64,000 nt of DNA from Octopus sinensis (lineage: Eukaryota): NCBI RefSeq assembly GCF_006345805.1, contig NW_021831988.1, forward strand, positions 124,001 through 188,000, in the 5' to 3' direction. Shown piece after piece: positions 10,347-52,991 of the stretch. The notes beneath the pieces are model-generated. The model was not told where the DNA came from and did not search any database. It saw only the letters and a program-made list of their open reading frames with translations. The position numbers and the translations under genes were made by a program. How positions within the stretch are numbered: position 1 is the first letter of the stretch; each line of letters opens with the position of its first letter.

Positions 10347-12043
10347 TTATAAAAAATTCTCCTCATCATGATTAGTAGAAAAATGTAAGTCTGCGAGAAA
10401 TTCGCTATCAGGACATAAATATTCAAAAATCTTTCTGGCCTCCAAAACCACATCATTCGGCCTCCTCAAAGGAGATGGACCAAGGCAAGGAAACACATTC
10501 CTCGGCAAACAATCAATCTCCCGACAGCAATCAACATCAAAATCCGCCCTCCACAACACAACCTGAATGTCCCCATAAAAGGAATCAATCAAATTGTCAA
10601 TATGAGTCCTAAACTCCTCTTCAACCCCGCCATGTGCAGTAAAGTGAACAACAACTTGAATTATATAAATAATTACAATATCCAGGAGGACATGTTCCAC
10701 TAGCATACGGCAATTCAAGGACAGTGATTGTACAATCCCCAGAAAATTCATGAAATAAAGTAATCTGAGAATTATCCCCCTCAGTCTTTATAGAAGTGTT
10801 GGTAAAAAGAATCGTCCTGTGGAATGTCTGACTGTTCTCTGCCCTCTGGCCAGTCGTGGATGACATATAAGAATCATTAATGAAAAAATATCTAAAATTT
10901 AATGACTGGAAAACCTGCATTTAATTTGTTCTTGGTTGGACAGAACTACACCAGAACAACTACGACTATATTATGCACAAAACCTGCCGGATTCGTCTTG
11001 GAGAAGACGTTCCACAGCCACAGACAGACAGCACGTGACCCCAAAGACTGCTCCATGTCTGGAAAATGCCTGCACAACATCTCCACATCCATACAGAGTA
11101 TACAAATAAGGAGACTTTCCATATGCCCCGGCCGACTTGATAAAACACAAAATCGCTTCCAAGCCCTAAAAAAGTCAAACAGTAAAAAAACCTCTTCCAT
11201 GGAAATTTGTCGGTTTTTGAGACAAAGTATAGAACAGATGTAGTCGACCAGCTTAGGGGTGAGTCCCTTAAGTCTCATTGTGTCGACAAACATGGAATCG
11301 GAGTTATCTTTTCTATAAATCACAATTTAGGCAACCTGCTGAATCAAAGATGTAATTCGAACAAAATTTAAAAAACTTATTGAGACTGTATTTTTCGACA
11401 TTTGTAAAATTTTTGGTAGAGAAAACCTCAGAACGAGAGCAGGGAGCCTTAGAAAATGTGACAAAATGACTTAACCGAATAAATATTTGATTTACTGTCT
11501 CGAATGAGTATTCGGTGGACAAGTTGAAAGGACAAATATTTATGGATTCCTGTCTTTATTATCTTTTCGATTAACGGACCGGACGCGTGGGTGACGTAGG
11601 GAAATAAATCCAACTGAAAGACACGCAATTTGGCCGACAATTCGGTAGGAATTTGAGAACTAAAATTCATCTTTTGAACAAACCATTCAAAGTTCCTAAA
11701 AACTACATTTTTATCAAATCTAAGATCTATCGAATTATCGTTATCAGTTCGTGGCTGAAATTGGTCCAGAACAGGCTAAAATGTACAGAAAATCGTACAT
11801 TCTGCATGAATGACTGAAACTCCTTAAATGAGAGAGTAGCCCACTGACTGCCATAAAAAGGATTTCTAAGTTAAATTCAAGTCGGAAAAACTTATCGATG
11901 AGGAGAACTGACATTCCGGCACGTTGTAGAGCAGAGGACAGAATAGTCTCAAATAGTCCTTCAAATCAGCACAAAGTCAACTCACCCGTGCCGTAGAACA
12001 CACAGTCAAAGTAATCCTGACCAATCCTAATGTCACTACACAT
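10347..12043 (-). CDS. CHM: Rab escort protein (Rab GGTase component A, GDI/REP family), multi-intron
   Basis: FDCVFYGT-GLFETILSSALQRAGMSVLLID-KNPFYGSQWA; FQLDLFP...KYLSFQ; APCSRSEVFSTKNFTNVEKYSLNKF; SAGAYGKSPYLYTLYGCGDVVQAFSRHGAVFG. Confidence 0.9.
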
Positions 12044-12123
12044 AAGGGAATTAAATAAGACAAATTAAAACAATAAAATTAATTCAAAGACAATAACTCA
12101 AAAAAAGAAAGTAATAGAACTAA

Positions 12124-12874
12124 TTAGTACCATCCTCGTCGTGGCCGGAAACGAGAGAAGCGTCTAAAAGACCCTCCACGACGGAAAGGAGGGGCACCAC
12201 GTCGATTATAAAACGGCTGGTTCTTCCTTTTGGTAGTCACCCGGACAATCCGCCCCTTAAATTCAGTCCCATCAAACTCCAGGGCATTCAAAACACTACT
12301 TTCCTCCTCAAATTGCACATAAGCAAAACTGCACATAATTCCCGCCAAAACTACCCCTTTGGATGTCCCTTGTAGTCCACCATAATCGTCACACGGTTGA
12401 TTTTCCCGCACTTTTGAAATAATTTTTCAAGGTCTTCCGCAGTCGAGCTGTAGTCCACCTACAAGTCACGTGTTCTGTCTACATTTCCTATATAAATAGA
12501 GCCCATGTCGATTTCGCTGCTGTCCAAAGGCACTTGCACTGCGTTTAGGTCGAGTTTGACTGCATTTATGGAGGGAAATACGTTTGTTTGGTTCGTGGGC
12601 CTGTTCTTCTGTGTCTGGCCGACAATTGTCCCCGTCCTCTGAGAGTTTCTCGTCAGTGACGTCTCTGAACTGTTTAAGTCGCTCAGCCTCGGCATCCATG
12701 TACTGCAGATTGCGTCTGATAGGCTCCAAGTCCTAATAGGTGTGATTGGGCTGGTCTAACATAGTTGTTGTTGGCTTCTTTTTTGCTGGGAGGGGCATCT
12801 TTTTTGATTTCTGTGGAGGATTGTCGTTTGAAACCTTCCTGGGATACCAAAATGTCTGCGGATTCGTCAATCAT
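12124..12874 (-). CDS. PABPN1: Nuclear poly(A)-binding protein (single RRM, RG-rich tail), 4 tiny introns
   Basis: [21 protein letters not shown]; [16 protein letters not shown]; GHPKG-FAYVQF; KRKNQP...RGG...RPRRGWY*. Confidence 0.9.
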
Positions 12875-13233
12875 TTTAACTATTAATATTAATAGGATAT
12901 ATTTTATTATTGTTGTTATTATATGTATTAGTTATAGTTATAGTAAAGTGTGACTAACCACGTCGAGAGTACAAATTTTATTCTTTTATTAATAATATAA
13001 ATTTATATTTCGAAATTAATTAAAACTATTAGAATAATAATAGTTTCGTGTTAATTTTTTAAAAATGTTGATTTAAAGAATCTTTTTTTAGTCATATCAT
13101 GTGCCCCACAAGGACGAATATTGTCCACGCCACTAAAATAGTTATAGACAGTCAACGATTATAGATTTTTTAAATATATTTATAATAATATATTTATATT
13201 TCCAAGTAAATAGACACGTTGGATTAAGTAGTT

Positions 13234-15041
13234 ATGGTGGCACAAACTGTCAACTCTGCAAACCCTCCAAGCAAAAATGAAGCCAACACTCAATATGGCA
13301 ACAAAGACAAGCCAAAACAAATAAGAAACAGCAACATAGTGGCAGCCAAGGCTGTATGTGATGCAATCCGAACAAGTCTTGGTCCCCGAGGAATGGACAA
13401 AATGGTCCACCAACCCCTCTAATACTCAGATTGTGGGCGACAAAGGAAAAGTCTCCATCTCCAATGACGGGGCCACCATTTTAAAGGAAATGCGAGTCCT
13501 CCATCCTGCTGCCAGAATGCTGGTCGAACTCTCCCGAGCCCAGGACATCGAAGCAGGGGATGGGACAACCAGTGTAGTAGTCCTAGCCGGGACACTCCTT
13601 CAGGCCTGTACCCGTCTTCTAGAAGTCGGTCAGAACTTTAATAACCAGTCCTAGGAGTGTCCCCTTGGGAGATTTGTGAAGGCCTGAGATTATTCTCGTT
13701 GGAGTGTTGTCGAGTTTTGAGGAACATGGCTTCCCCAGTTGACATGACTGATCACAGAAAACTCCAAAATATAGCCTCCACTGCTCTCAACTCGAAAGTC
13801 GTGTCTCAATACTCCTCCGTTCTTTCTCCCCTCTGCGTCAACGCGGTTCTCCAGGTGAGGAGACCGGACAACAGTGTGGACCTGCAGGACATCAAGATCT
13901 TCACCAGACAGAGGTAATCCACGGCTAGCATTGACAGTGGGACGGTGGATGACAGTCAGTTATTCCACGGACTGATATTCCCCAGGATTAGTTCGACTGA
14001 CGTGCCTAAGAAAATGGCCAAAGTGGCTTTAATTCAGTACTGTTTGTCTCCCCCCAAATCTGACGTTGGTTGTATGGCTGAATATGCAGATGGAATTCAC
14101 TGTCAATGTGTCGGACTATACTCAAATAGACCGAGCGTTTAGACAGGAACAGGCTTATATTCTGGAGAGGGTCAAAGCTATCAAGGCAGCTGGAGTTGAT
14201 CTGCTTTTGATCCAGAAATCTATATTGAGGGACGCCACCAACTCGATGGCTCTTCATTTCCTTAAGAAATTCAATATTAGAGTGGTGCGTGACATTGAGA
14301 GGACAGATGTGGAGATTATATGTAAAGTATGTATATATGTGGACAATTCAGGCGTTCGGATGTAGACCCATTGCCAGTCCTGATCATCTTTTGCCTCAGA
14401 ATCTGGGAATATCTCCACTTATAGAGGAAACGATGGTGGGGGACAGTAAAGTGTTGAAGGTCTGTTTTTTGTGCTGAATTGGCAGGCTGCTGCCCAGACT
14501 GGTGCACACGTGACCAGCATTCTTTTGAGGGGGTCGAATGAGATGGTTTTGGAGGAGGCTGAACGGTCTGTGCACGACGCCTTGTGTGTGATTCGTTGTT
14601 TGGTTAAGGAGAGGTAGTTGGGGGTGTTGAGGGTAGTTTTGTGGTGGCAGGAGGGGGAGCCACTGAAATTGAGTTGTCGCTGGCATTGAGTCGATATGCC
14701 TTGGGACTGAGTGGGAGTCGGCAGATGTGTGTGTCGGCCTTTGCGGAGTCGTTGGAGTTGATTCCGTACACGTTGGCGGAGAATGCAGGTCTACAGCCGA
14801 TATCGACGGTGACGAAACTGCGGAATGCCCACAGTGAGAAGGGAGGGGAGCAGATGGGGATTGATGTTGGGAAGGGATTGGTTGGTTGTATGATCCAGGC
14901 CAATGTGATTCAGCCACTCACAGTCAATACTAGTGCTATTACATTTGCCTGTGAGACTGTGTCTAACATCATGAAGATTGATGATGTGGTTGTCTGCTTT
15001 TGTCACATTGTCTGTAGATTATCACACAGGGCAGATATTAG
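13234..15041 (+). CDS. CCT4: Chaperonin CCT/TRiC subunit delta, about 8 tiny introns
   Basis: [52 protein letters not shown]; AGDGTTSVV; [20 protein letters not shown]; MKIDDVV. Confidence 0.97.
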
Positions 15042-17584
15042 TCACTCTGGTTGTTCGGTTCATGATTTCTTGTTATTTTTGTACGTATTGTCTGTAGGGA
15101 GTAGTGTATAGTCTTGCTAGTGATTTTGATTAGTTGGGAAGTAAGCAATTTGTCGCATTTGTGTTTTATGATTTGTTGTTTCGATTATGAGTTTGAACAA
15201 ATTTGCTGAACTTGTTTTCAAAATTGTTATGTGAGATTTAATGCAGAAAAATCGAACCTAATTCAAGGGAATAAAATATTTTTTTGTCCGTAGTAATTTA
15301 AACTGAGCCATTCTTCAGTCGGGACCATTTTGGTTTTATCAAATTTTAGTAGAAGCTTCTGGTAGGGAGCTGTTCTGATAAGAATAATAGTTATCAAAAT
15401 GTATGGAAGTATTACAGTAATTATATGACCTGGAGAATGAAATATTTCCCTCACTCCACGAATCCTTGTAAAGAGCTGAATTTTTAAGTTTGTTTCATTT
15501 ACTAAGGAACTTCCAACCAGTTTAAACAATCATGTTTTCAAAATTAGTTTATTTTTAATTCACTCATGAGATAACTATTAGGAAATCACATTGACTAATA
15601 AAGAATTACTTCATTCTATGTTATCTATGATATTTATTATTTAGATATACAGTGTTAATTTCCAGATGAGCTATTTATATTTAAATTGGATTTTCAATTT
15701 ACTTAAAATTTGAGTTGGTAACTACAGTCGAGAAACTTGATGAATTTTACGATCTTATTAAACCAATCAATAATAATACTTTCAAAAATTTTATACTTTC
15801 ACAAATTTATACATTGAATAACCCCAACAATTTTGTTTGTGGCGGAGGATTCTAATACATGTTAATTTTTAATTTAAGGCATAAATTTAAATTAAAAACT
15901 ATAAATTACTATTTATTAGAATTAGTCATCATTTTTAAAAAAAACAGAAATTATTAAAATGAGTCATTAATTTTTTTCATAAAAAATTGATTTAGTGAAT
16001 AGATTTATTAAATTATATTAAAATATCGTATAAGTATCTCTCATTTTTTAAAAAGGAAGACTTTTATTGTTTCACATTATTATTAATTGCACATTCGCAA
16101 CAACAAGAAAAAAAAACTTTTCGTCGCTTGTGTCACACCTTGAAAGATTTTGTCTATTTTTGTCTGTTAGACACCTATTTTGCGGAGGCTGTCTACATCT
16201 GTATTTTCTAGTGGCAATCAGACATGCTTGAGGTCGTTATTTAAGATTAGTGGTAGTGTGGCCTGCCTCAAAAAATCCCAGAGCATTGAAAGTGTGTTTC
16301 CATGATATCATTGAAAGTATGTGCCAAAGAGTCCCCATTGGCTCTTAGTGATAGTTGCATCTAATTGTTCTGCTTGAAAACGGAGTATAGATCTTGGTTC
16401 TTGTTTCACAATAAGTGTGTAGAACAAGAAAATTAAAGATGATAGAAACACTAAAACTATTAAAAACAATCCATTCTAAAAATTGATTATTTTGAAAATT
16501 AGTAATTACATTTTTCGAATTATCATCACTCATTAGTATAATTACTTTAAATTTCTATAAAACGAGTTTTTTCGTAAAAAATAAAATCGCGAATGTTGGA
16601 ATATTTCAAAAACCTAATAAAAACCTTATCAACATACAAGAAATCAATTCGAATAGCAAATTTAATATCAAGCATAATATTAACAGTAAAAATTGAATTA
16701 TATTCGCAGACAATGAGCCTCACTCTTTTGGGATGCAGCATTCGATATTCCATTAATAACCTCCCTCTAATCATTATCCGAGACACACAAAGCATTCGGG
16801 AAATATCTATTTTGGGGATATTTACTGTCATCCTTTTTTGTATGGCACTCACTGACTGGTTGGCTGTCGTCTATAACTGGCAATTCATCATGAAAATTGT
16901 AATTAATTTTTCTTTATTTTTAGTTTTTGCTATTTTTCTTGTTATCGGCTGTGATATTTCCATGTATTTATTTCACAATTAGCACTCATTCCAAAGTGAT
17001 TTCAAAAATAAGTGAGACTTTTCACTGGGTTTTTGAATGAGAAAATACATTTGCTTACAAATTTATTATTATTTTTTTATTATGAACATAAATAAAAATT
17101 TATTCTTGTACTTTGTTTGTACTAGCTTAAAGACAAAATAGGACTCCATAAAACTATTTAAATATTTGAATAAATTTTAATGTTTCTAATTTAAAAAATT
17201 TATTTGAAAAACAAATGTTGATTTAAAAAGTTTCTAGTGATGAAGGCGTGTTTTTTATTTTCTCAGAACACGCAAATTCTGACAGCATTTTTTGAGTTTG
17301 AGTAAACCACAAAAATATCCATCATTTACTAGATATAATTACTTCGATTTTAAATGGTCAGAAAACACACTAATTCTAAAAATAGTCAATAACCCAATAA
17401 ACCGGCCTCTAGTCAAAAAATTCAACATGAAAAATGCAAAAATGTTACCCAACAGTTGTCACGATCTAACAACAACCAAAGTGAATATATATTTTAAATA
17501 TATTTATTAAAATTAAATTACAAAAAATATTAAAAATCCAATTATTAATAATAGAAAGGATTCTCATTAAAATTTATGGTCGAA

Positions 17585-18460
17585 ATGACAAGTGAAGAAA
17601 AGCACACTGACATTGAGACCCCCATGGAATTTCTAGGGGAAACAAAAGGGCTGTGTGTTTTTTGTTCCTTCTCGTTATTCCGAGTGTACTGCCTGGGAGA
17701 TAACTGACTATAGTAATAAAGTCACATTGACCCAAAACCCTGATCTCGGAGAGTCACACTTTTGCTGTTCGTGTCACATTTCTACCCCCAAAGACACATG
17801 TTCAGTGGATGAGTTCAGTATCCGCATCAAACGAGATATCCCTTCAGTCAAATGCTCGAATAAAGTCGTGTCCTGCAAGCGATGTAGTCTCATTCTCGGG
17901 AGAGAGAGCAGTGGTTGTATTCACTGTGATTATTTGGATAGACTGTTTGATTCTCCACAGTGAGCTTGTATTGCTACAACAGAGTCCTCTAAATTGGTAT
18001 TGTTGATATTGACGGATAGTTTTCCGTGTGGTGAAGACTCGGTGGGGATTCGACTGATGAGAAATGTCATTTCGTACTGTTCTTCTAATAGTATCTATCG
18101 AATATTGCTTACGTCAAAAACTAACCTTAATTCGTCTTTGTATATATTTTTTACAAACACGGAGATTCTGCGAGGTGAGATGCGCCTCGATGAATCAGAC
18201 TGTTTTGACGTGGATGATTTGATTGTTAATAAAAGACGTATTTTATACAAAATTATTCCTCGAAAAATGGAGTGAAGATGAGTTTTAATTTGTAGTAAAT
18301 TGGACTTTTATTGCGAGAAAGTGAATGTGTCATCGTACGGACTGTCCTGTCTTTTGCATTATTTAAACAATCTGACGATGAGTTTGTTGAATGGTGAGAG
18401 ACTAGTCGATGAGTATTTTGTATTCACTGGCTTTAATCACACTAGATTGCATACTTCTGA
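17585..18460 (+). CDS. Probable UBE3D-like (HECT_2 domain) protein, multi-intron
   Basis: CxxC pairs (FCCSCH, SCKRCSLILG), RILYK and a C-terminus LSCLLHYLNNLTMSLLNGERLVDEYF-IAYF* resemble recalled UBE3D architecture. Confidence 0.5.
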
Positions 18461-18570
18461 AGGCGTACTTAACTTTGTAATGTCTTGTGTCTTTTTATTG
18501 TAATGAAAACAGTACATTTTGCTGAATAGTTTTTACTCAATTTCTAAAAGTCTGTATGATTACTCATAAG

Positions 18571-24545: not shown

Positions 24546-25985
24546 TTAGCTAACCGTCTTGTATCGCATAGCCTATTATAAACAAAGCAACACAAACCTT
24601 ACAAAAGTCGTCATGAAGTGACAAGCAGAACTCAATTCTCTTATTAAACGCCTCAATTGGCTCAGCCGACTTATACGCGTCCTCAGGAGGGAGTGTCATC
24701 AATGTCTGTCTTTTATCCACAAGTTGTGCATCAATTACTTTAGCAGAGATTGCCTGCACAACTCATCACCCAAACACACCTTCTCAATATAATGCCGGCA
24801 ATCATCCGACACTAATTTAGCCGCAATATCCGCCACGGAAATCCGCGAATATGCCGCACAAATAGACCGGAGACCAGTCTTGATAACATTATGGTGAAGT
24901 CTGGATATCAGACTCAACGTCCCCTCTTCTTTAAACCTATCAGCATACGTCTCCACCACTGCTTCAAATCTGTCGATTCGGCCAATTTTGACAGCTGGAA
25001 TGACTCATAACCCCCACCATATGCCAGCTTATAATAATGTGTCAATGCATTTCTCAAACTGTCCTGAAAGAACAACTTCCTCTCAGGAATGTTTCCCATC
25101 AGCAGTTGGACCACAACCAAATATTTGGTAACCTTGGACAGTCAACTGACAGTATTCACCGATTGGTGGAACCCGACTGCTCTGTTTTGGGGTGCCCGTC
25201 TCAGTGCCATTTGAAAACAGTCAAATGCTTCAGAATAATCGAGTTTGATGGCTCGAATCCTCCCAATGTAGTACAAATATCGAGCACACTCATCATTCGA
25301 TGCATTGGGCGGCCACTGCATTATCGTCATTTTATCCGCCTGTTCATATCTGTTCTGCAGAATAGAACTCCGCAGCAACAAGTTAAGAATAGTGGCCTGA
25401 CTGTCCGTATTGGAATACTGCAAGGCTCGGTCGTAGCATATTTGGAGCATTCTGAGAGTAATGGACCAATTTATACGGCACGATTGTATCGAGACTCTCA
25501 TCTGCCTCATATGCCATCGAACAGTAATAAAAACATTTTGGAGCAATCAGTGAGATTGTGAAGGGGTCGCCAGCCTTAAGACTCATCACATACTTCATTA
25601 GGAGTTGTGCAATCATCGCACTCTCTCTTCTCCACATGTATACCATCAAAGTCAGCACACCGAGATAACAATATTGGACTGAGCCTAATGAAATAAGATT
25701 ATTTCCCTTTGTTTATATAAAGGGGGGTTTACTGGTTTGAACATGTCAAGGACTGTTTCATAGCCTAAGGAAATGTGGAGAAATGAAGGGTCTTTTATTC
25801 CGTTTCGGATTTGTTTTAATTTGCGAAGAGCTCGAATCACACTTTTCCGGGAATCGTGACAATTTGATGAAACTTTTAGACTTTTGTATTGAACTTGGAG
25901 GCCTGCGTGGTTTAATATTGGCTATACTTTTTAGCAGTTCTTCCTTTGTTAGTACACAGCTATCTTCAACCTCCATAGACTCCAT
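24546..25985 (-). CDS. PSMD3: 26S proteasome regulatory subunit Rpn3, multi-intron
   Basis: TILNLLLRSSI...ARYLYYIGRIRAIKLDYSEA...ALRRAPQNRAVGFHQ; VVQLLMGNIPER; RLHHNVIKTGLRSI; AFNKRIEFCLSLH...K-AMRY. Confidence 0.93.
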
Positions 25986-26053
25986 AACCACACCACAAGA
26001 CGACACGATTAAATAATACTATTTTTTACAACTTATTTTTATAAACAACAAAA

Positions 26054-27289
26054 TTATATAAAATTCCGTAATTTCTCTTGAAGGTAAAAGTCTGTGAGAA
26101 AATTGTCGTGAATCTCATAGAGTGACTCAATCTCTGCCTTCCTCCCCAATGACCCCAACACCCCCAACTCCTATAAACTCAACAAATTCACTTCCTGCTT
26201 AAAATCCCCTCCAAAATCCATTTTCCCCACAAAATCAATCATCAAGTCAATTTTGTGTGTGTCTCTCTCGTTGTGTTTGACTGTCCCCTGTATATTGAAT
26301 CGGTCAATCTCTGAAGGATACACTCCCAGCCACGTCAACTCCGGAGTGGGGACCAACATCCTCTTCCTCCCCCCATGGAGATATGTCAGGACTATTTCCA
26401 CCCCTCAAATAACCCACAAGAACTAACCATGTGGGTCAGCATCCACCAAAACAAACCCGGGAATATTTAATTTATTTATTATATGGTTAACCAACGAAGA
26501 CGTTTTTTTATCAGGATATCCCTTCCCCTAAATATCCCCAACCCAACCAAAACTGTGATCAGCAAAGTGTCCGGAAATTTACTCCTAAAGCCATGACTTA
26601 GCAAATGTTGGAAAACACTATCTTTCTCGACTACAAGCAGTGAATTGACTGTTTTTGGATAATATATATCTGCCTATTGTAGAAATGACTTACAGGCAAT
26701 GTCGGAAGAGTCCACTGTGATGGGAGTTCCCTAAATCGTTTTTTAAATGGACAATACACTGAGAGAGTCGCAGTTTGTGATCTTGTTGTGGCTTAAAAGT
26801 GAAATATTGCCAGAAATCAGTCCTTTGGCTGAACAAGACTAAAATTTAAATTTTCTGGCTGAACTATCCCGAGGTCTCTGTCTGACAGATTCATGGCCCG
26901 ACTGAGTCTTCTTATTAGAGTTACAGTCATTCTCTGGTTGGGAAATGTTTGTATATTTCTGTAATAAATGTCTCTGGCTTTGAATCACTGTGGGGAACCT
27001 TGTTGTGATTTCAAACGACCTTTGTAGACAGGATTGGGAGATTTTGAGTATTTTGAATATGTTTACTTGAATATAATTTAGTAAATTACCTGCGGTTAGG
27101 ATTGACTTTCGATTGGCCAGGTTGAGCCATATTTTAAGATGTGGAGAATTGTTGTTTATGATAAGAATTCGTCGTGATTTGCTGTTGATGTTTATTAAAA
27201 AATCAAGGATTATTTTTTCAATTTCTTTCAAAATGTGGTTTTTTTGATTACTATTTATTTTATTGGATTAAAGCGACAAACTTATTCAT
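26054..27289 (-). CDS. SPO11: Meiotic recombination protein Spo11, multi-intron
   Basis: Spliced TT-RDIYY (catalytic Tyr), SAKGLISG, VVEKDSVF, IT-GKGYPD, LVDADPH-GVEI, WLGVYPSE and KAEIESL. Confidence 0.93.
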
Positions 27290-28437: not shown

Positions 28438-29186
28438 TTAATCAAATTTAATGTTAGAATGAATAAAGCAGTCAAAAAGATAGTCCAAATCATTCGACGC
28501 AAAATTAAAATTCTTTCTGAACTTAACATTTGGCAGCAGCAAATCAACAAAAATAAAAATATTTCGTCTCAGACAAACAAGACAGTCCCCCAAATCCTGG
28601 AGGGAACACTTTTCGTGGCATATCTCGTCCTCCTCCCTGCACATCCCACAACTCGTCCTCGAGTCCAAACGAATTCGTCGTTGGTTGTCATTCCGCCCCA
28701 CCAAATCCTCGTTTTTCCGTAAAATTGTGCACAAATCGACCAACAGTTGTTCAATATCCCCAGTTCTGTGGTCAAATTGGTCGAGAAATTGCAAATTGGG
28801 GCATATTTTGACTACAAATTCGAAAACTTGTCTTCTTAGGTGGACAATCCTGCCAATTAGAGCACATTTGAGTTGTTGTTCGAGGGATTCGAGGGCCTGT
28901 AGTTTGAGATGGTCGTTGTTTGTCTGATTTGGGGTGTTTTGAGGGATGTTTGTGTCGAGTTCTTCCTCGGGGGAGTCTTCATCACTATTTTTTGGACGGT
29001 TCACTGAGACTGGGCGACTTTGTTGGGGATTGTAGCCTCTGAATTTTGATTTTTTGTTGAGGTTTTCTATTATTCGGGAATTTAACACCACATCGGAAGG
29101 TTTTCGTAGAAGATCACGTTTTTTGGCACTACGTCGGAGGAAGTTTGAGCCTATTTCATCTCAAATAAGACACCACCTTGACTCAT
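28438..29186 (-). CDS. Orphan protein with low-complexity N-terminus and Cys-rich C-terminal region
   Basis: 217-codon open exon plus a short first exon (MSQ-GSNFLRR, 26-nt intron). Gene-like GC content and skew. Confidence 0.6.
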
Positions 29187-32695: not shown

Positions 32696-34227
32696 ATGTC
32701 TTGTTTAGTTGCTCCACTTGTTTCTGCTGTATTTGATTATATTTATTAATAGGTGGCCTGTTGCTGCGGATCTGCAGCTTGTTCAGTTTGTTGTTGCAGC
32801 TGCTGTCCAAAACAGACAAGTTCGACAGTCACCCGACTTATATACGGACTATTCCTATTCATCTGGATAGGCATAGCTGCCCTCTTCATGCTCCCCAGTA
32901 TGCGAGACAAAGTCGAAAAGGTGACCTTCTCTAACATCCACAGATCCCTTTCCTATGTAAAGGCTACACGGTGGTCAATCCGATCATTTCCGCGGAGAAA
33001 TGCCACAACTTGGCCTCCTACCTGTCCGCCTATCGAGTTTGTTTTGGACTGGCAATGTTCTTTCTAATCATGTCCATCTTCGTCGTGGGGGTTTTGAGTT
33101 CGGATACATGCCGTGGAAAATTCCACAACGGATTTTGGGGGATCAAAGTCCTTTTCTGTTTGGGATTTGTCGTTTCCGCGTTTTTTATCCCCGGCGGTGA
33201 ATTCGAAAAAGGTTAAAATCCGTTTTTGATTGGTCAGTTTGGCTGGTCATTTCAATGACGGGGGCTTTTTTGTTTATTTTAATACAATTGTTGTTGTTGG
33301 TCGACTTTGCCCACGTTTGGTGCGAGTCGTGGCTGGAAAAACACTCAGAATCGACTCACCAAGGCTGGATTGTCTGTCTTTCCTTATTCACGTTCTTGTT
33401 CTACTCTCTGAGCATTGCCTGCTTCGGGCTATTGCTGACATACTACACGGGAAGTGGGGTTTGTGGGTTTGGGTTGTTTATTGTAGAATGCATGTGGGTT
33501 GAATAAAGCTGTCATTTCGATTTATTTCCTGATTTGCTGTGCTTTTACTGTTGTGTCTCTTCTTCCTGCAGTACAAGAAGGTTTGTGGGGGATTTATTGT
33601 AGCGACGTCGACTTCTGGGATATTCCAAGCTTCGGTCATGTCGGCTTATCTTGGATTCCTGACTTGGAGTGCTCTTAATAGTTCTACTGGTTTGTGTTTT
33701 ATGTGACTGAAGATGTTGCTTGTAATCCCGGAATGTCAAACATCACCTCATTTTCCAAGATTACAAAAAGTGGTTTGCCCTCGTCTGATTGGCTGTCGTT
33801 GTTTATTTTTGTTGTGGCTGTGCTTTACTCGACGTTGGTGTTGTTTTGGAGTGTAGAATGTCGAGTTCGACCAACGCGAGTTTCTCCAAATTGGCAGGAA
33901 GGGACGACAGTGCTCCCATTACTGTGAAGGCGGTCGAGTCTGGAGGGGATGAGAAGATTGTCGAGGATGAAGAGGAGTGTGTGTCGTACAGTTATTCGTG
34001 GTTTCATGTAATGATGGCCTCCGCTGTGATGTACTGCATGATGTTTATGACCAAGTGGTACATGTAAGGCTGTGTTGCTTATTGATAGACCGAGTCATAG
34101 TACGACTGACCTTGTGCCCACTAATAACTCGTTTTGGGTTAAATGTGTGGCTTCTTGGATGTGTGCTGTTCTTTATTTATGGACTTTGGTTGCCCCTGTG
34201 TTTATCACTTCCCGGGACTTTACTTAA
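32696..34227 (+). CDS. SERINC: Serine incorporator (SERINC/TDE) membrane protein, multi-intron
   Basis: [13 protein letters not shown]...STVTRLIY; [11 protein letters not shown]; FHNGFWGIK; [20 protein letters not shown]; YSYSWFH; FWVKCVASW...LWTLVAP...RDF*. Confidence 0.93.
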
Positions 34228-35057
34228 TTTGATTGTATATTCATTATAATATTTAACACGTGGTTTCCTATTACTTTTGGTGAGGAATTATTAGTCCATT
34301 CTCTTCCTATAATTAGGCAAGTACTTTTCTTGGCTCACTTAAATTTTCCGAATTTCAATATTGGTTTTCAAAAACATGAATTTAATATTTGTCTAAAATG
34401 ATCTAACAAATTTGATTTAATCCAAACAAAGGATGTTTTGATGAGAATTAGTAAATTTGGTCATTGCGTATTGTTTACATGTAATATCAAACATAATCTA
34501 TGAAAATTACAAATGTTAGTAATTTGTGGCACCGGGTGTTCATTAATGTGCCACATCCCACAAGGTGACCCCAAATATTGCGATAGGTCAAATAAAAGAC
34601 ACTATTCTTGTGTTCCTAAGACAATCTAATATTTTTTGTATACTCAAAAGCCTTTTAATCATTAAATATATTGGAAAACACAATGGTAGCATCATGTCAG
34701 AGTGATTTATTTGTTTCCCTAGATGACCTATTTTTGATTTCCCAGAAATATTTTTTTACTTTGCTTAATCCATATTATTTAAAGTTCTGATCGATCAAGT
34801 ATGTCATTTCCAATTTAAACTCTCTTTTATGCGCATTATTTCATTTAATGCATAAATCGACGCTTTCCGATCACATCGAATAACTCACCTCGTTCCGCTT
34901 GTCATTTCATTGAGAAGACAACTCAAAATAAACCTAAAAACACCACAAAATATCTCCCCTGACCATTTAATAGCACTAAATAGGACACTAATGAATAAAT
35001 GAACAACAATCATCAGTAACGGATATTAGAATGATAATATGAGAAAGTTAAACTGGG

Positions 35058-35652
35058 CTAATTAAGAGAATCTCGAACCAAGTTTTGAACCTTCTTTTTG
35101 AACAAAACTGGATCGTCACGAAAATCATGTGCCGCCTCCAAATTTGCAGGACTTTCCGTATTCGGTTCTAAAAATCAGTCCAATTTGCCGGAAACCAGAC
35201 AAAAGTGACACCACAGAGAGCAGGACACTTGATATTGACTGTGCCGCACACCAACGCTCATCACTGTTCTCGTAAAAGTTGGGATCTTCGCCCGGCGGAT
35301 GTAGAATTGAGACACAGACTCGTCCGTCTTCATAAACTAGAATATGTTTAAAAGAAATGACTGTTTGGGTGATAAATGGGTGATATAAATCGCAGTTCTG
35401 GTGGCTCAATTGGGTAGTCAGTAGAAAACTTGAGTTGGGCACTGAAAATTCCGTCTTCGTAGAAGGTCCCGGGGGGTCCAATCATCACGACGTTCCACAA
35501 AAAGAAATTCTCGTCGCTCTCAGGTTCGGCAAATATATTTGGCAACTGTTCTTGTCTTAATTCTATAAATCGAGATTAAATCATGTGGTTGTGCTTAAAA
35601 ATTGTCATTTATTACGTTGTAGTTCCTGAACTAATCGTCTTTTGGCCTGCAT
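35058..35652 (-). CDS. UBE2G2: Ubiquitin-conjugating enzyme E2 G (Ubc7-type), 3 introns
   Basis: GPPGTFYEDGIF...YPIEPP...[32 protein letters not shown]...EPNTESPAN, with catalytic Cys and acidic loop. Confidence 0.88.
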
Positions 35653-40361: not shown

Positions 40362-40541
40362 AGTTTTGTTTGTGGTTTATTTTGAAGCTTCAACTCATAT
40401 TTATGGGGAATTCTGGATCCCGGTCAAATTATATCAACGGCAAGTCAATGAGGCTTGGACTCTCCATTTTTCTTTATCCAAAGGTTCTTTGATACAAACT
40501 TATATCTTCAGAAAGGTAAAGATAATCAAAGAATTGAAAGC
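40362..40541 (+). repeat. Partial duplicate of the carbonic anhydrase-like gene (39404-39583), introns retained
   Basis: Near-identical 180-bp direct copy beginning agttttgtttgtggtttattttgaag. Confidence 0.9.
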
Positions 40542-44368: not shown

Positions 44369-45037
44369 ATGAACCGAGATCCTATTACTATTAAATGTGT
44401 AGTCGTCGGGGACGGGGGAGTAGGCAAAACATGTCTCATGATAACATATGCATATGGACAATACCCAGAGTCCTATGTCCCAACAGTTGAGTCATTCAAA
44501 TGTTAAATTTAGGTCTTTGATAATTACTCTGTGAATGTGTCTGTCAATTCCCAGGATGTCAATTTATGCATATTCGACACTGCGGGACAAGAGGAATATT
44601 CCTACATTCGAGCTCTCGCCTACAAAAACACGGACATTTTTATAATAACATTTTCTGTTGTTATACCTGCATCGTTCGATAACGTCAAATCATATGTTTT
44701 GCTTAAATATAATTATTTTAGTGGGTTCCGGAAATTAGAAAGAATTATGGATCGAATAGTTTGTGCATTTTGGTTGGGACTCAAGTCGACCTGCGAGAAG
44801 ACGCTTATATTAAAGAACAGCTAAGATTGAGATATCAGTCCCCCATAACCAGAGAACAAGGAATGGCCTTAGCCAGAGAACTGAATATGCAACACTATTT
44901 CGACACTTCGTCTTTTAAATTTGTATTTTGATGATTTTACAGTTTAGTATAATATTCGGGAATTAATGAATCAAGTTATTAAAAGCGTTTTAATTCAGAG
45001 AACGATCAAAGCTAAAAAGAAGTGTACGCTTTTATAG
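44369..45037 (+). CDS. Rho-family small GTPase, Cdc42/RhoQ-like, 3 tiny introns
   Basis: [16 protein letters not shown]...YVPT-VFDNY...FDTAGQEEY...[11 protein letters not shown]...KKKCTLL* (CAAX). Confidence 0.92.
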
Positions 45038-45827: not shown

Positions 45828-48692
45828 ATGACTGCCAACAATCCACAAGAAACAACCCTTCCGGTCGAAGAAAACACTGACAATTCCCCAAAGGGGGGAA
45901 TGAAGACAGCAGCTCAAAAAAAACAGGAGAAAAAGCTAAGAGACAAACAAAAGCGAAAAGAAACAAAAACAGAAAATAAACACATTCTACCTGTCCAGGA
46001 AGAAGTGCCTGAAAAGGACATCACCGAGGACAAACAGGAACCAGAAAATGTCTCATCAAAAAAAACAAAAAAAAGAAATGCGGTTTTTTACTTTTTGAAT
46101 AAAACAGTTTGCCGCCCAAATCCGTGAAGCAATGATAATAAAAGAGCGAGAAGAAGAACGCCTGAGATTAGAACAGGAAGCTCTCCGCAAAAAAGCAGAG
46201 GAAGAAGAAAGACTGAGGCTCGAAGAGGAGGAAAAGGCCAAAGCCGCGGCTGAAAAGGCCAAGCAAGAAGCCCGAGAACTCAAAAAACGTCAAATCGCGG
46301 AAAATAAATTGGCAAACAGTAAAATCAACAAAGACCGTCAAAAAGTTAAAGAATTGTTACAAAGAAGAGGTAATCCCTTAAAAATATAATTCCAGGTCTC
46401 GATAAAGGACAACTCTCCAACATTTCCGTGGCCAAATCTGCCGCGACTGTTTCGACGGATGTGGGTACTCCCTGTATTCCCGATTCGACTGAAAATGACG
46501 GTTTTTTGATTATTTAATATTTTTAGTGGAAGAGGAGGAGATCTCTTCGGTCTACACAGGAGACTTGAATCTCCCGCCAGAAGAAAGGATAAAAGTAGAG
46601 GACATGTTTGATTTTGTAGGAGAGAAGGGTGGTGAATAAAGAGCGAAGGAGAGTGGACAATCTGCGAGCCCCGGTGGTGTGCGTTCTTGGGCACGTGGAC
46701 ACAGGGAAGACCAAAATCCTGGATAAAGTGGGGGATGTGTATTCATTGGCCAGTTGAGGCAGACCAATGTCCAGGACGGCGAGGCAGGGGGAATCACCCA
46801 GCAAATCGGAGCCACGAATGTCCCAATGCACGAAATCGTCAAGAAAACTTCGATGGTCAAAAACGTGAGTTTTGTACAAAAATAATTTTGATAGATCGAC
46901 TGTGGAAAATACAAGTTTCCCGGACTTTTAGTGATCGACACTCCTGGCCACGAGTCCTTTAGGTCTTTGATGTTGTTGATTTTGTAGTAATTTGAGGTCA
47001 CGTGGGTCGTCGTTGTGTGATATTGCAATATTGGTAGTCGATGTGATGCATGGACTGGAGAAGCAGACAATCGAGTCAATTAAACTATTAATTAACGGTA
47101 AAACCCCCTTTATTGTGGCACTCAATAAGGTTATTCGTGCTTCGGCTAATTTAGATTGATCGTCTAACAAAGTGGAACTCCCAGCCGGGGACGGACGTGA
47201 GGGATGTCTTGGAATCCCAAGTTCTCAACGTTCAACTCGATTTCAAGAGCCGATTTAGTAATATTGTGGCAGAATTTGCAATCCAGGCTGGTCATTGTGC
47301 ATATTGTTAGGGATTGAATGTCAGTTTGTTCCACGAGAATGACGATTTGTCTAACTGTGCGTCAGTTGTGCCCACATCTGCACTGTCTGGGGATGGAATG
47401 GGGAATCTAATGGCATTGGTGTGTGACATTTGTCAGGATAAACTGTCTCGGAAGTTGATGTACTCAGAGGAGGTCGATGCCACTGTAATGGAGGTTGGCA
47501 CCTTTTTATTTCTGAGGTAAAAACCATAACTGGGTTGGGGACAACCATCGATATTATCCTGGTTAATGGAATGGTGAAGGAAGGGAACACAATTGTGGTT
47601 GCAGGACAGGATGGGCCTATCGTCACGTCGGTGAGGTCCGTCCTCACTCCCCCGCCCATGAAGGAACTGAGGATTAAAGTAAGATAGGACAATTGAGAGG
47701 GCTAGTCGACTTATATTCATCACAAGGCAGTGAAGGGAGCCCGCGGAATTAAACTCACAGCAAAATCGTTGGAAGGAGCCATTGCAGGTCTTCCTCTCCT
47801 AGTGGCATATCACGAGGATGAGATTGAGTGTTGTTCGGTTGTGTTTATTGTGGTGTTGTAGAAAGAAGTCGCTCTTTGTCTCAAATCCGCGTTGAACTGC
47901 ATCAACCTGTCAGAACAAGGAGTATATGTCCAGGCCTCTACTTTGGGGTCACTCGAGGCACTTTTGGAGTTTTTGCGAACCAAGAATATTCCAGTATGTG
48001 TTGGTTTGACAAGTATGGCAGTACTGTGGAATCAATGTCGGGCCAGTCCATCGCAAAGATGTTGTCCACGCCTCAGTTATGCTAGAAAAGTGCAAAAAGT
48101 GGGCAGTGATTTTGGCCTTTGATGTCCCTGTGGATAAGGCAGCACAGGAATTGGCCGACTCACAGGGAGTAAAAATATTCACAGCGGACATAATATACCA
48201 CCTCTTCGATAAACTGACTCAATATGTGGAACAGGAACAAACGAGAGTAAAGAATTTGTACCGCCCAAAGACCATTTTTCCATGCCGTCTCAGAATTCTC
48301 CCCGAACATATCATTAAGACGAGGGATCCCATTATTTTGGGTGTTCGTGTGGAAGAGGGGATTCTCTGCACTGGGACTCCCATTTGTTTGCAGAGTGGGG
48401 TGTTTTTGGGGCGTGTAGCGTCGATTGAATCGTCCAATGTTCATGTGGCGAGTTCCCGCAAAGGGTCGGAGGTGGCTGTCAAAATCGTGTATAATGGCAC
48501 TGAGGGGAAAAAAATGTATGGAAGGCATTTTACTGAAGCGGATAATTTGTTGAGTCAGGCTGGATGAGTTGTGTTATGTAATAGGTCACCAGGGACTCGA
48601 TCGACATTTTGAAGCAGTATTTTAGGGATGAGCTCACCAAAGCTGATTGGAAGCTGATTGTGGAGTTGAAAGGATATTTTGGTATTGTTTAA
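45828..48692 (+). CDS. EIF5B: Translation initiation factor eIF5B, multi-intron
   Basis: K/E-rich N-terminus; [16 protein letters not shown]; [13 protein letters not shown]; DTPGHESF; MHGLEKQT; [19 protein letters not shown]; AVILAFDV; KMYGRHF. Confidence 0.96.
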
Positions 48693-49140: not shown

Positions 49141-50955
49141 ATGGACAGGTGGAACGTCCATCTAAATTACAACAAAAGAGAGGGGCATATTACAGGGCGA
49201 CAGCATGTCTCCGCTGCTGTTCGTCCTCTGCCTAGAACCGCTGAGTAGAGTCCTCACTGCCCAATTCGAACAAATGTCGATCGAACATGAAGGAGGGTGT
49301 TTTAGCACCAACCATCTCATGTTCATAGACGACATTAAGCTGTTCGCTCGGTCTTCAGAGATCCTTCACTCAATGGGTAAAGTCCTGAAAGGTTTCATGA
49401 AGGCCGTGGGGTTGGAGCTCAACTACAACAAGTCGGCGACTAACACCCCTGTGTGTGGTGACCTAGTCAAAGTCTTGGAGGAACACCAAGGATATAAGTA
49501 TCTTGGTGTGGTTGAGAGTCCAGCCTCATTAATCACACCCGAAACGAGAAAGTGTGTAGTGGAGGGTGTGCGTAGTAGGGCGGCAATGTTATGTAAGACT
49601 CGGCTCAATGCACGGAACTTATTTCATGCCTTGAACGAGTATGCCATCTCATTGCTAAACTACTACGTTGGCCTGATCGAATTCGAGCCGAGTGAGTACG
49701 ATGAAATGGACCTTATTGTCCGAAGAGTACTCCGAGAGAATCATGTCCACGTGTTGGCAAGCAATAAGGAGAGATTGTACTTGTCTCGCGGGCAGCTAGG
49801 ACGTGGACTGAGTAACATCGTACACTTAAGTGAGCGAATTCTTACTAAGATGCACGACACCTTGTGGAGTGGGTCGAGTGTATCCCAAAGGAAGGCTGCC
49901 ATCCTTGCTGCTGAAAAAGCGCGTGGTACACACCTAGGGACCATAAAAGGCTATGTGTCGGCTAAGTATGGTCTAGGTGCTACCCAAGTTAATGTGAAGG
50001 AGTTGATCAAACTTCAAAAGGAGTCTTTAATTAAAAAGATCAACTTAAAAGTCCTTCACAAGACTCTCTTTAGCAGCCTGGACAACCCGCACATTGACGT
50101 ATCGTCGTCATCTACGTGGCTGAAATATGGGAATAACTCTCCCCGATCAGAAGGGTTGTTCTCATATTTGCAGGATAGAAACTTTTTTAATGGTCAACGG
50201 AAACAGTGTAACCACTGTAAGAGTAAGGCAATGACCGTTGACCATTTAGCCACGAAGTGCGGGAGTATGCTTTACCATGATTACACATGGAGGCATAACG
50301 AGGTGGTGAGGTCCCTCCATCTTTTGCTCTGCAACAAGTATGCCTTGAGGCGGTCCAGAAAGTTGCGAACCCATCGAGTTCAATCGGTGTGTGAGAACTC
50401 GCGGGTGTGCATTAAGGTGGATACCCCCATACGCACCTCGATTGTTGTCCAGCACAACAGACCCGACATTGTGGTCCACGATAAGGTCACCGGGGAGATT
50501 GTTATCGTGGAGGTGGGCATCACGTGCCTAGACCGTTTGCAGATAGTGGAAGTGGAGAAAAGGAGGAAGTATGACCTCCTTGCAAACGAGCTAGGACTGA
50601 TGCACCAGTGCAAAGTCCATGTCATCCCGTGTGTGATGACATGGGATGGACTGGTCACCAAATACCACAAGCGGTACTTAAGACAGTTGGATGTAGATAA
50701 GTCTCTACAGGCTTATATACAGTCAACTGTTCTTAAGAGGACTCTGGAGAGTGTCTCGTTTGATGCTCGCCGATCCAGCCCTTTCCTGACGTTTAGTCAG
50801 CAAGAGGCGCTGGACTGCACCTTCTCGAAGGTCTACAGTGCCAGAGAAGAGGAGGAAGAAGGGGAGGAGGTGCGTGGAGTGCCGCCTTCTGCTCACTTCG
50901 AAGGCTCTGGACTTAGTTAGTAAAATTACTTAGTTAATTAGTTTCTTTCTTAATA
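49141..50955 (+). mobile_element. R4/Dong-like non-LTR retrotransposon, 5'-truncated, uninterrupted 571-aa RT-C/CCHC/restriction-like endonuclease ORF (49205-50920)
   Basis: QGDSMSPLLF, MFIDDIKL, YKYLG, RLYLSRGQLGRGL, CNHC...HLATKC...RHNEV and RPDIVV...E...K..KY. Confidence 0.93.
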
Positions 50956-51322
50956 AATGTTTACAACATGTAAGAGTTGGTAATGATAATATCGAGACTT
51001 GAAGCACCCTATATAAGCCTGAAAAAGCGGTAAAAATAGAAAAATGGTAAAAAAAATTAAAAAATGTCAAATTTTTAGGTAAAAAATGAGAGTGGCAAAT
51101 CATAGAGGAAGTAAATTAGAGAAGTTTGACTGTATAAAGTACGTGTATTTAAACATAAAAAATTCTTATAATTTTCACCAACCCAGCCATATTTATAAAA
51201 TTTAACTTATATTCAATTGTTTTAAAAATATATTTATCGTCAATAAATTGTTATACCAATTGTGTCCATTGTGGTTCCATATTGTATACATTCATTAATC
51301 CACATTAAAAATTATTTTAGAG

Positions 51323-52991
51323 ATGTCATCTGACATAAGAAACAATATCTCTCTAGTAGCTGCAGAGGCAGATTACAACGAAACCCAGCAGGCATTCTCT
51401 GCTGGCCAGGCAGAGCTCCTTGCAGAGTTTGAATTTAAAAAGAAGGTCTCCCATCCCCCAATATCCACATAGGCTCGCCAAATCCACGTCTCCACCGACG
51501 ACAGTGACGTAAAGTACCAACTAAGGAGACTCCAGGAACCAATAAGTAATCCATATATATAACCTCCAGTCTTGTTCGGGGAGGACGCGGCCGATCGAAG
51601 AGACCGTCTTCGTCTCCTCCTCGCCAAACACAGCGATGATATTTTCAAGATCCCCGGAGCCCCCAACCAAAGGGAGACCCAGGAAATGCAGGAATTGGAA
51701 CAAATTGTGTGGTATCACGAGGGGACGGAGGAATTGACCAAGGCCAGGCTGTGGATTGCCGAGTACTCAATTCCGAGGGCTGTCCAGAGATTGAAGAGCT
51801 GTGTGGAGCAGAAGGGTCTTCCCAACACTCAAAAAAATGCACACATTCAGGAAACTCACAAAAAAATATCGGTTAGTATGGTTAACCTAATTAAATAAAA
51901 TTTTTTTTCGATAGCGCGAAATTTAGAATATTTCTAGTGGATGCAGTCAAATGGCGGATTCTCGGCCGATTTCATGCTGCAATTTCAGTCCGAATGATCA
52001 AATGTTAGTCACAGGGTCTTGGTTAGTGCGAATATAGTAATTCATACAGGACAGGCACCTGTAAACTGTGGAGTGTCCCCAATTGTGATTTGATTAGAAC
52101 CTTAACTGGTAAGAACAGTCTTTAATTGTAGGACACAAGGATTCTGTCAGTTCAGTAGCATTTCATCCGAATGCGAGGGAAATTGAGAGTGAAGAGAGCG
52201 AAGGATCCCTCATGTTGGCCACGAGTGCCTTCGATGGGTCAGTCAAGTTGTGGGATTCGTCAAGTGACAAGGCAGTGGCTGATTTGGAGGGACATGCCCC
52301 CTACAGAGTGGGAGGACTGGGATGGCACCCCTCTGGTCTATTTCTGGCCACATGTTGGTGAGGATGTGGATTAACCCCAGTTATGACTGTTCGTGGAGAT
52401 TGTTTGATTTAGAAGAGAGTGTGGAAGTACTCCACCAAGAAGGGCATGTGCGGGCAGTGCATTGTGTGTCCTTCCAGTGTGATGGGTCACTCGTGGTCAC
52501 TGGGAGTCTGGACGAAACAGCGAGGGTGTGGGATTTGAGGACAGGGAGATGTGTCCTTCTCCTGAAGGGGCATCAAGGACCTGTTCTCTCCGTAGACTAT
52601 TCTCCCAGTGGGTATGAGTAGGGATATATGCAGATATATACTGGCCACAGGGAGTAGTGATAATACGTGCAAGATATGGGACTTGAGGCAACGGGCCTGT
52701 GTGTATACAATAGCCGCCCACACCAACAATGTGTCCTCTGTTAAGTTCCAGAGTGAGTTGTGTGTGATTAGTGTGATAGAGGGACATAATTATAGTGCTC
52801 ACTTTTTGGTGACGGGGTCGTATGACAAGACAGTCAAGATATGGACACATCCATTGTGGACTCCTTTAAAGACGTTGGAGGGACATATGGATAAGATTAC
52901 TTCCTTGGACGTCGATGTGGCTGGGGAGACTATTGTCACTACTAGTTTTGACAGGACTGTTCGGATTTGGAATTCACAAACACTCATGTGA
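51323..52991 (+). CDS. PRPF4: U4/U6 snRNP protein Prp4 (WD40), multi-intron
   Basis: [22 protein letters not shown]...[14 protein letters not shown]; WYHEG; [13 protein letters not shown]; WD repeats with HQEGH and VWDLRTGRC. Confidence 0.95.

Follow-up and report, generated by a model that had tools for sequence, protein, structure and literature searches.

Many genes in a 64,000-nucleotide stretch of DNA filed under Octopus sinensis (NCBI RefSeq assembly GCF_006345805.1, contig NW_021831988.1, positions 124,001 to 188,000; hereafter the window, with positions counted from its first letter) begin rich in C and A on their sense strand and end rich in G and T. This within-gene flip of nucleotide skew, which a sequence-only reading of the window had noticed between positions 10,347 and 52,991, is confirmed here as real and strong. 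It can be seen without gene models: the keto skew of the + strand, (G+T-A-C)/n, rises from left to right, from negative to positive, across genes of either strand. The raw values run from -0.21 to +0.31 in CCT4, from -0.15 to +0.21 in PABPN1, from -0.29 to +0.23 in SPO11, from -0.28 to +0.31 in an orphan gene at 28.4 kb and from -0.18 to +0.19 in PRPF4, with the same rise, from about -0.2/-0.3 to +0.2/+0.3, in PSMD3 and UBE2G2.

Spliced open reading frames (ORFs) were predicted with a dynamic program (introns of 21-32 nt, YAG preferred), and 17 genes were curated by hand. Gene names were checked by homology for CCT4, PSMD3, SPO11, PRPF4, a UBE2G-type E2 enzyme, eIF5B, PABPN1, the Rab escort protein (CHM), anoctamin and SERINC. 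As silent sites we took fourfold-degenerate sites plus intron interiors, on the sense strand of the 17 curated genes. Pooled silent sites have the composition A.34, C.24, G.12, T.29 in the first fifth of the genes and A.21, C.15, G.29, T.35 in the last fifth; GC skew moves from -0.33 to +0.30 and (T-A)/(T+A) from -0.08 to +0.25, and the sign change is thus present at neutral sites when these are ordered by gene position. Fourfold sites taken alone go from a GC skew of -0.40 to +0.24, and introns from -0.24 to +0.58. Of the 17 genes, 16 have a positive silent-site slope (Wilcoxon p=4e-4), and the mean slope is 0.27. Third codon positions, fourfold sites and intron interiors all show a strong gradient. 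At codon positions 1 and 2 it is weak, with a mean slope of +0.08 (positive in 12 of 17 genes, p=0.013), about one third of the silent-site effect; amino-acid composition, which had been named as a possible sole cause, does not explain the gradient. The first 300 bp of window genes have a mean keto skew of -0.11 (negative in 10 of 13) and the last 300 bp a mean of +0.28.

CCT4 is the clearest individual case. Its intron GC skew goes from -0.78 to +0.50, and the base counts reported earlier for two of its introns are exact: 11 C and 2 G at 13405-13429, 13 G and no C at 14614-14636. Intron skew likewise moves from -0.48 to +0.56 in PABPN1 and from -0.46 to +0.59 in PSMD3, and intron GC skew spans the full range, from -1.0 to +1.0, in PRPF4. 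The gradient does not depend on intron density, since the 28.4-kb orphan, which has a single intron, is among the genes with a strong slope (Table 1). In SERINC, codon positions 1 and 2 have the opposite slope (-0.11) to silent sites. The sequence-only reading had listed CCT4, eIF5B, PRPF4, SERINC, SPO11, PSMD3, PABPN1, UBE2G2 and the 28.4-kb orphan as starting C/A-rich and ending G/T-rich. At silent sites this description stands, with the exception of eIF5B, where the slope at fourfold and intron sites is small and that at positions 1 and 2 is +0.21 (p=9e-7); because its K/E-rich N-terminal region has A-rich codons, we attribute the eIF5B gradient mostly to amino-acid content. In the strongest genes the skew climbs all the way to the 3′ end. 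Homopolymer runs on the sense strand of 12 window genes change with the gradient: between the 5′ and the 3′ end, G-runs become more frequent (6 to 15 per kb), and C-runs (11 to 5 per kb) and A-runs (30 to 12 per kb) become rarer.

The two components of the gradient move together. The G-versus-C slope is positive in 13 of 17 genes (p=0.007) and the T-versus-A slope in 15 of 17 (p=3e-4), the two are correlated across genes (rho 0.65, p=0.004), and purine content and G+C are flat along genes. Hence, the gradient lies purely on the amino/keto axis, along which both transitions act. CpG is depleted only mildly, and evenly over the length of genes (observed/expected 0.72-0.78 in 12 genes, 0.86 in the whole window), so that a methylation-driven gradient is not indicated.

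Table 1. Genes, spacers and control ORF of the window. Slopes are those at silent sites unless stated otherwise; for spacers and gene boundaries, the + strand keto skew to the left and right is given.
Feature	Position	Strand	Match	Skew
CHM/Rab escort protein gene	10347..12043	-	PDB, Rab escort protein 1, E=5e-48	
Spacer, PABPN1 3′ end to CHM 5′ end, tandem, 80 bp	12044..12123			no reset; left -0.16, right -0.16
PABPN1	12124..12874	-	PDB, poly(A)-binding protein 2, E=8e-17	strong gradient; slope +0.63, p=8e-6
Spacer, PABPN1/CCT4, head-to-head	12875..13233			reset; left +0.24, right -0.23
CCT4, 9 exons, 23-26 nt introns	13234..15041	+	homologues ~58% identity, E about 1e-185	clearest case; slope +0.51, p=1e-9
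G/T-rich tail 3′ of CCT4 stop codon, probably 3′ untranslated region (UTR)	15042..15300	+		
Unnamed 5-exon gene	17576..18503	+		moderate gradient; slope +0.27, p=0.047
PSMD3 (Rpn3)	24550..25985	-	PDB, E=2e-60	strong gradient; slope +0.49, p=1e-6
Spacer, SPO11 stop to PSMD3 ATG, tandem, 68 bp	25986..26053			reset; left +0.16, right -0.12
SPO11 (exact start and splicing near 3′ end uncertain)	26054..27289	-	PDB, TopoVI-A/SPO11, E=2e-10 and 2e-8	strong gradient; slope +0.47, p=5e-6
Orphan gene, 241 aa, one intron	28438..29186	-	no PDB match	strong gradient; third-position slope +0.62, p=2e-8
Boundary, 28.4-kb orphan/anoctamin, tandem				reset; left +0.29, right -0.13
Anoctamin (TMEM16)	29383..31934	-	PDB, anoctamin-6, E=3e-47	little or no gradient; slope +0.08, p=0.31
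Boundary, anoctamin/SERINC, head-to-head				no reset; left +0.07, right +0.07
SERINC	32696..34227	+	PDB, serine incorporator 3, E=2e-100	strong silent-site gradient; slope +0.41, p=2e-6
Spacer, SERINC/UBE2G2, tail-to-tail	34228..34844			reset; left +0.27, right -0.21
UBE2G2-type E2 enzyme	34845..35652	-	PDB, E about 1e-44	gradient present; slope +0.37, p=8e-4
Rho-family GTPase	44369..45037	+	name read off translation only	gradient at fourfold and intron sites; slope +0.49, p=1e-3
eIF5B	45828..48567	+	PDB, E=2e-190	slope +0.09, p=0.23 (fourfold and intron sites)
LINE reverse-transcriptase ORF (control)	49205..50920	+		no gradient; slope +0.11, p=0.14
PRPF4	51323..52991	+	PDB, Prp4, E=6e-105	gradient present; slope +0.35, p=3e-4

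One further ORF, A+T-rich, of a single exon and 129 aa (16593-16982, + strand), has no obvious homology and a slope of +0.55 (p=2e-4), among the steepest; it may represent a gene so far overlooked, or local composition may have produced the slope by chance.

The window has the features of a compact animal-type genome, with genes carrying 22-28 nt GT..AG introns and using the standard genetic code, A+T-rich spacers of 50-700 bp, and transposons that make up about half of the sequence. A homology search with CCT4 found only distant relatives, mostly spiralians, and no close relative (best ~58-60% identity). Among animals, introns this short have been reported only for myxobolid myxozoans and Dicyema japonicum (PMC13644364; PMC6736024; PMC6543705). 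Assembly GCA_006345805.1 has unplaced contigs coding for Octopus sinensis "uncharacterized proteins", with which the LINE ORF of the window shares 99% identity; the copy at 49177-50957 matches locus L001 11182-12962 (contig VCDQ01007963.1 of that assembly) at 99.3% identity, and further repeat families are common to the window and those contigs at 92-99% identity. Six such contigs (40-374 kb; loci L001-L006) have tiny-intron genes and the same repeat families. D. japonicum has been collected from the renal sacs of O. sinensis. Based on the tiny introns, the shared LINE and repeats, and this host relationship, the window and the six loci are probably DNA of a dicyemid parasite inside the octopus assembly, and dicyemid DNA appears to have been filed as octopus sequence both in GCA_006345805.1 and in its RefSeq proteins. 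The LINE copy in L001 is annotated as an octopus "uncharacterized protein LOC...".

Several other features of this DNA were noted. Transposon remnants, mixed and dense, lie at 1834-2790, 6188-9028, 20452-21308, 22777-23638, 37087-37567, 53655-55188, 55234-56129, 58668-59381 and 59878-60573, and are of pogo/Tigger-like, LINE, retroviral-type integrase, IS1595-like, mariner/Tc1-like and hAT-like types. An inverted duplication of 1456 bp (97.1% identity) occupies 40595-42048 and 61846-63296, and each copy carries a gene for a 125-aa Thr/Lys-rich single-pass membrane protein (41579-41956, - strand; 61938-62315, + strand). A direct duplication of 180 bp (97.8%), at 39404-39583 and 40362-40541, repeats part of the carbonic-anhydrase-like gene and has given rise to a second ORF fragment ~1 kb downstream. 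SPO11, the core enzyme making meiotic double-strand breaks, is retained in what is probably a highly reduced parasite, its gene lying 68 bp upstream of PSMD3.

We analysed the six other loci with genes called automatically and transposons flagged by copy number. Among unique genes of at least 600 bp, keto skew in the last 300 bp exceeds that in the first 300 bp in 18 of 22 (p=0.006); the same comparison gives 16 of 31 for transposon-like ORFs (p=0.89). The effect is weaker than in the window, and the 5′ part averages only -0.02, that is, about zero and not clearly negative. The mean slope of all 51 unique genes is +0.12, with 40 positive (p=2e-5). No gradient was found in 43 transposon-like ORFs (mean slope -0.02), so that transposons do not share the pattern irrespective of gene limits; transposon remnant ORFs have a small, uniform sense-strand G+T excess (+0.05) without a 5′-3′ trend. 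Among the unique genes, slope rises with the G+C content of third codon positions (GC3; rho 0.33, p=0.017), the stronger gradients belonging to G+C-richer, mostly housekeeping genes, and 26 of 27 slopes are positive at a GC3 of at least 0.40. A metagene of 26 genes with a GC3 of at least 0.40 starts at -0.08 and -0.11 within the first 300 bp, passes through zero 300-450 bp after the ATG, stays at about +0.1 to +0.19 thereafter, and reaches +0.21 in the last 150 bp. Given the near-zero 5′ part in the six loci and the almost uniformly positive slopes above this GC3 value, we conclude that the rise along genes is general, and that clear sign inversion is a property of the G+C-richer genes, which are crowded in this window.

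Not every gene follows the pattern. Among the curated models of the window, we detected no gradient in the anoctamin, carbonic-anhydrase, mucin-like, COX20-like and Bcl-2-like genes. The sense strand of CHM is G/T-rich throughout, with a third-position keto skew of +0.19, +0.11 and +0.50 by thirds and no C/A-rich 5′ part; CHM may be co-transcribed with PABPN1, or driven by a weak promoter. CHM, COX20 and the Bcl-2-like ORF had been singled out as exceptions before, and rightly so.

The skew resets at four tested spacers in head-to-head, tandem and tail-to-tail arrangements, among them the 68-bp spacer between SPO11 and PSMD3, where both the length and the restart had been given exactly. The G/T-rich stretch continues 100-200 bp beyond the stop codon (mean keto skew +0.18 in the first 100 bp) and then falls to zero. 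Beyond the CCT4 stop codon the keto skew is +0.46 and then +0.32 in the first 200 bp and about zero further on; an AATAAA-like signal lies close by, at +229. Upstream of the ATG, the mean over 200 bp is about zero, with negative values for PABPN1, the gene at 17.6 kb and eIF5B. Three boundaries are one-sided: that between the PABPN1 3′ end and the CHM 5′ end, that between the 28.4-kb orphan 3′ end and the COX20-like 5′ end, and that between the CCT4 3′ end and non-genic DNA. These one-sided boundaries lead us to favour gene-autonomous causes over processes centred on spacers.

A spacer-centred process could take the form of recurrent double-strand breaks, at meiotic SPO11 hotspots or programmed, in nucleosome-free spacers. 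Subsequent 5′ resection would expose the 3′-ended strand to deamination, leaving the + strand G/T-rich to the left of the spacer and C/A-rich to its right. Such breaks would give the correct sign without extra assumptions, through changes of deamination type (C-to-T, A-to-G), and are in keeping with the near symmetry of the pattern under reverse complement, with resets at spacers of all three orientations, with the length of known resection tracts and with the SPO11 gene in the window; a steeper gradient in G+C-richer genes is also expected if recombination drives GC-biased conversion as well. We nevertheless consider this origin distinctly unlikely, given the three one-sided boundaries, the A+T content of the spacers, which is the highest of any DNA in the window, and the lack of any comparable skew known at stable promoter hotspots in yeast. 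We also found no mirrored C/A-rich tract beyond the 3′ flanks of CCT4, PRPF4 and eIF5B, although these flanks are partly young transposons, which weakens the test. A bolder version, to which we attach very little weight, has the spacers of dicyemids serving as places where somatic chromatin diminution makes its programmed breaks, or as very hot sites of recombinational breakage, with the skew as a long-term footprint of, or adaptation to, repeated resection and healing, and with each gene a potential gene-sized DNA unit. This idea stems from the fact that the strand that would end 3′ at a spacer break is G/T-rich on both sides, like the telomeric G-strand, a polarity that matches what chromosome healing would need.

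The sequence-only reading had instead proposed that each gene is, or was, its own replicon or a gene-sized somatic DNA molecule, with replication asymmetry flipping within the gene. The skew does share with that of bacterial replichores and human N-domains the G+T versus A+C axis and sign changes at defined points, and symmetry under reverse complement and resets at spacers are what such a model would give. In replication, the leading strand is usually G/T-rich. In the window the skew changes upward inside genes and abruptly downward in spacers, with a period of 1-3 kb and not of tens of kb to Mb, unlike replication skew domains; spacers would have to be termini, and origins would have to lie mid-gene every 1-3 kb. 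Moreover, boundaries coincide with genes and can be one-sided, transposon ORFs lack the gradient, and somatic molecules leave no heritable mutations. Apart from one TTGGGTTGGG inside a SPO11 intron, the window contains no telomere-type repeats. Dicyemids have been reported to undergo chromatin diminution and to contain circular DNAs, but the reported Dicyema circles are ~700-bp non-coding or mitochondrial molecules and not nuclear genes (PMC6543705). We regard per-gene replication units as highly improbable.

A pattern of this kind is already known from fungi. According to McLean & Tirosh (2011), coding strands of nearly all unicellular fungi have a C bias at the 5′ end and a G bias at the 3′ end; the pattern is seen at fourfold sites, reaches promoters and 3′ UTRs, affects amino-acid usage, correlates weakly with expression level and was attributed to transcription (PMC3315797). 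This precedent contradicts the premise, from which the sequence-only reading had started, that transcription-coupled bias must have one sign along a gene. The window genes resemble the fungal ones in the C-biased 5′ and G-biased 3′ coding strand with intermediate values between, in the signal at fourfold sites, in its reach past the coding region on the 3′ side, in the shift of amino-acid usage, in variation from gene to gene and in the lack of an established mechanism. They differ in that fungal AT skew is flat along genes (A>T throughout), a flatness that the authors used as an argument against deamination (PMC3315797), whereas here T/A skew flips from A>T to T>A in step with G/C skew, as coupled C-to-T and A-to-G changes on one strand would give. 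Introns of 22-28 nt carry the strongest signal here, the silent-site amplitude is large (GC skew beyond +/-0.7 in the introns of single genes), positions 1 and 2 are weaker than silent sites whereas in fungi both are of similar magnitude, extension upstream into promoters is inconsistent, and the organism is an animal. The coupled T/A flip, the occurrence in an animal and the tiny-intron signal set this case apart; in the literature we searched, there was no report of a two-signed pattern in any animal, and none for Dicyema.

Classical transcription-associated strand asymmetry was reportedly described by Green (2003) and Touchon (2003-2004). In mammalian genes it takes the form of a G+T excess on the non-template strand (PMC2927911). 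The gene bodies and 3′ parts of the window genes are alike: their neutral sites, introns among them, show G>C and T>A on the sense strand. However, the classical asymmetry keeps a single sign over the whole unit and peaks near the 5′ end, whereas here the first 0.3-0.45 kb are opposite in sign and the skew grows toward the 3′ end. Plants, fungi and invertebrates have been described as having C>G skew at transcription start sites (Fujimori 2005, PMC555766); a C bias of invertebrate start sites is noted by McLean & Tirosh, who also cite Aerts 2004 and Touchon 2004 for C>G skew near start sites (PMC3315797). The sense-strand C excess near the gene start is common to both situations, but the start-site signals are narrow peaks, whereas the C/A-rich part described here covers several hundred bases of coding sequence and introns and is joined to an opposite 3′ domain. 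Vertebrate mitochondrial DNA acquires a gradient of C-to-T and A-to-G changes with time spent single-stranded. Our pattern is similar in the graded, coupled change of both transition types at silent sites; it differs in being nuclear, per gene and two-signed, the mitochondrial gradient belonging to a single organellar replicon.

We asked whether RNA structure could account for the gradient. C/A-rich and G/U-rich segments can pair in principle, and selection could have favoured transcripts whose 5′ and 3′ parts pair, in a fold-back, as the sequence-only reading had suggested, or in a circularised form. Cofolding of the first 200 nt with the last 200 nt of a gene gives a gain slightly above that of 5′-5′ pairings (-12.2 versus -9.8 kcal/mol, p=0.057; 3′-3′ pairings, -10.6 kcal/mol). 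However, a gene's own ends gain no more than do its 5′ end and the 3′ ends of other genes (-12.4 versus -12.2 kcal/mol, p=1.0), and introns, which are removed from the mRNA, show the strongest skew. We therefore rejected fold-back, which can hardly be right. Selection against local RNA structure is likewise unsupported: the local folding energy, which had been put forward as a check, is -24.0 kcal/mol per 120 nt and is matched by shuffles made within window (-23.6) or across the gene (-24.7).

Both results also bear on the broader idea that a C/A-rich start and a G/T-rich end are selected in the transcript or the template. Such selection might act on the pacing of RNA polymerase II by a CTP-limitation "ramp", on keeping pre-mRNA unstructured for the splicing of tiny introns, or on G-rich pausing and termination in a genome with spacers of 50-700 bp. 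The confinement of the pattern to the gene and its 3′ flank speaks for this idea, the rise of G-runs and fall of C-runs along genes could favour 3′ pausing, and of the two explanations put forward for fungi, one is an adaptive ramp of CTP-limited elongation, the other being phase-specific mutational regimes of RNA polymerase II (PMC3315797). An adaptive origin is nonetheless unlikely in our judgement: local folding is not weakened, the two ends of a gene are not specially complementary, CTP limitation leaves the coupled A-to-T shift unexplained, and selection on thousands of silent and intronic sites is, as a general population-genetic expectation, unlikely to be effective in a parasite.

Our best explanation, which we advance tentatively and rate at a little short of an even chance, is a mutational one: each transcription unit would leave its own footprint, a transition bias that is asymmetric between the strands and reverses polarity within the gene. 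Over the ~0.3-0.45 kb that follow the ATG, C and A would accumulate on the sense strand through net G-to-A and T-to-C changes, equivalent to C-to-T and A-to-G on the template strand. Further on, and most of all in the last few hundred bases and the 3′ UTR, G and T would be gained instead, through C-to-T and A-to-G changes on the sense strand itself, which is the classical non-template-strand signature. By analogy with the fungal pattern, the initiation-proximal phase and the elongation and termination phases of RNA polymerase II may differ in the asymmetry of damage or repair on the two strands. We infer the mutational as opposed to selected origin, the role of transcription as the cause, and the strand exposed or repaired in each phase from the restriction of the gradient to the transition axis, from unrelated silent classes (fourfold, intron) that are similar in amplitude, with the 3′ flank behaving alike, and from the one-sided boundaries, the transposon ORFs without a gradient, replication in six loci, the fungal precedent and the failure of RNA-structure explanations.

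Several observations weigh against a transcription-linked mutational footprint. We know of no established mechanism that makes the template strand more mutated or exposed over the opening few hundred bases of a gene. At strictly silent sites, the net bias of the sense strand is only +0.014 and not significant; because it is so near zero, the pattern is nearly symmetric under reverse complement, as the sequence-only reading had stated, and an orientation-blind process could also have produced it. The model does not account for the heterogeneity among genes, with anoctamin and carbonic-anhydrase genes lacking a gradient, and an inositol-3-phosphate synthase gene (L004 169-1817, - strand) has a reversed slope of -0.24 (p=4e-4), the only clear counter-example among the 51 genes, with a GC3 of 0.58 that is among the highest of unique genes. 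Youth alone may explain the missing gradient in transposon ORFs, and the correlation with GC3 is not directly predicted by the model. A net sense-strand G+T excess had also been considered as proof of an orientation-dependent cause; it is small and not significant at strictly silent sites, and was dropped.

The sign of the 5′ part could be obtained in another way, if antisense transcription or R-loops covered the first few hundred bases and the 3′ ends had sense R-loops or pausing. Nothing beyond the classical single-strand deamination signature would then be needed for the correct sign at both ends. A G-rich displaced strand favours R-loops, so that the skew could be self-reinforcing, and the placement of G-runs agrees with this, on the template strand in 5′ parts and on the sense strand in 3′ parts. 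With the deamination signature, the two transcripts would have to be divergent from mid-gene, and not convergent as first suggested. However, an antisense start ~0.4 kb inside most genes is no known general feature, and in the head-to-head PABPN1/CCT4 pair the neighbour's transcript crosses neither 5′ part. We think it improbable that antisense transcription underlies the gradient.

Both transition types moving together makes deamination-type explanations, dismissed for fungi, testable again, in a setting where 25-base introns in an animal provide many neutral sites spread over each gene; the cause of the like pattern in fungi has been open since 2011. Along each protein the gradient skews codon usage and, to a lesser degree, amino-acid content, which matters for gene prediction and for the phylogenetics of these fast-evolving dicyemid parasites, and it is a composition signature that helps to separate dicyemid from host DNA in cephalopod assemblies. 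Under a mutational origin, dicyemid genes would record unusually clearly how differently the two strands are treated near the start and near the end of a transcription unit.

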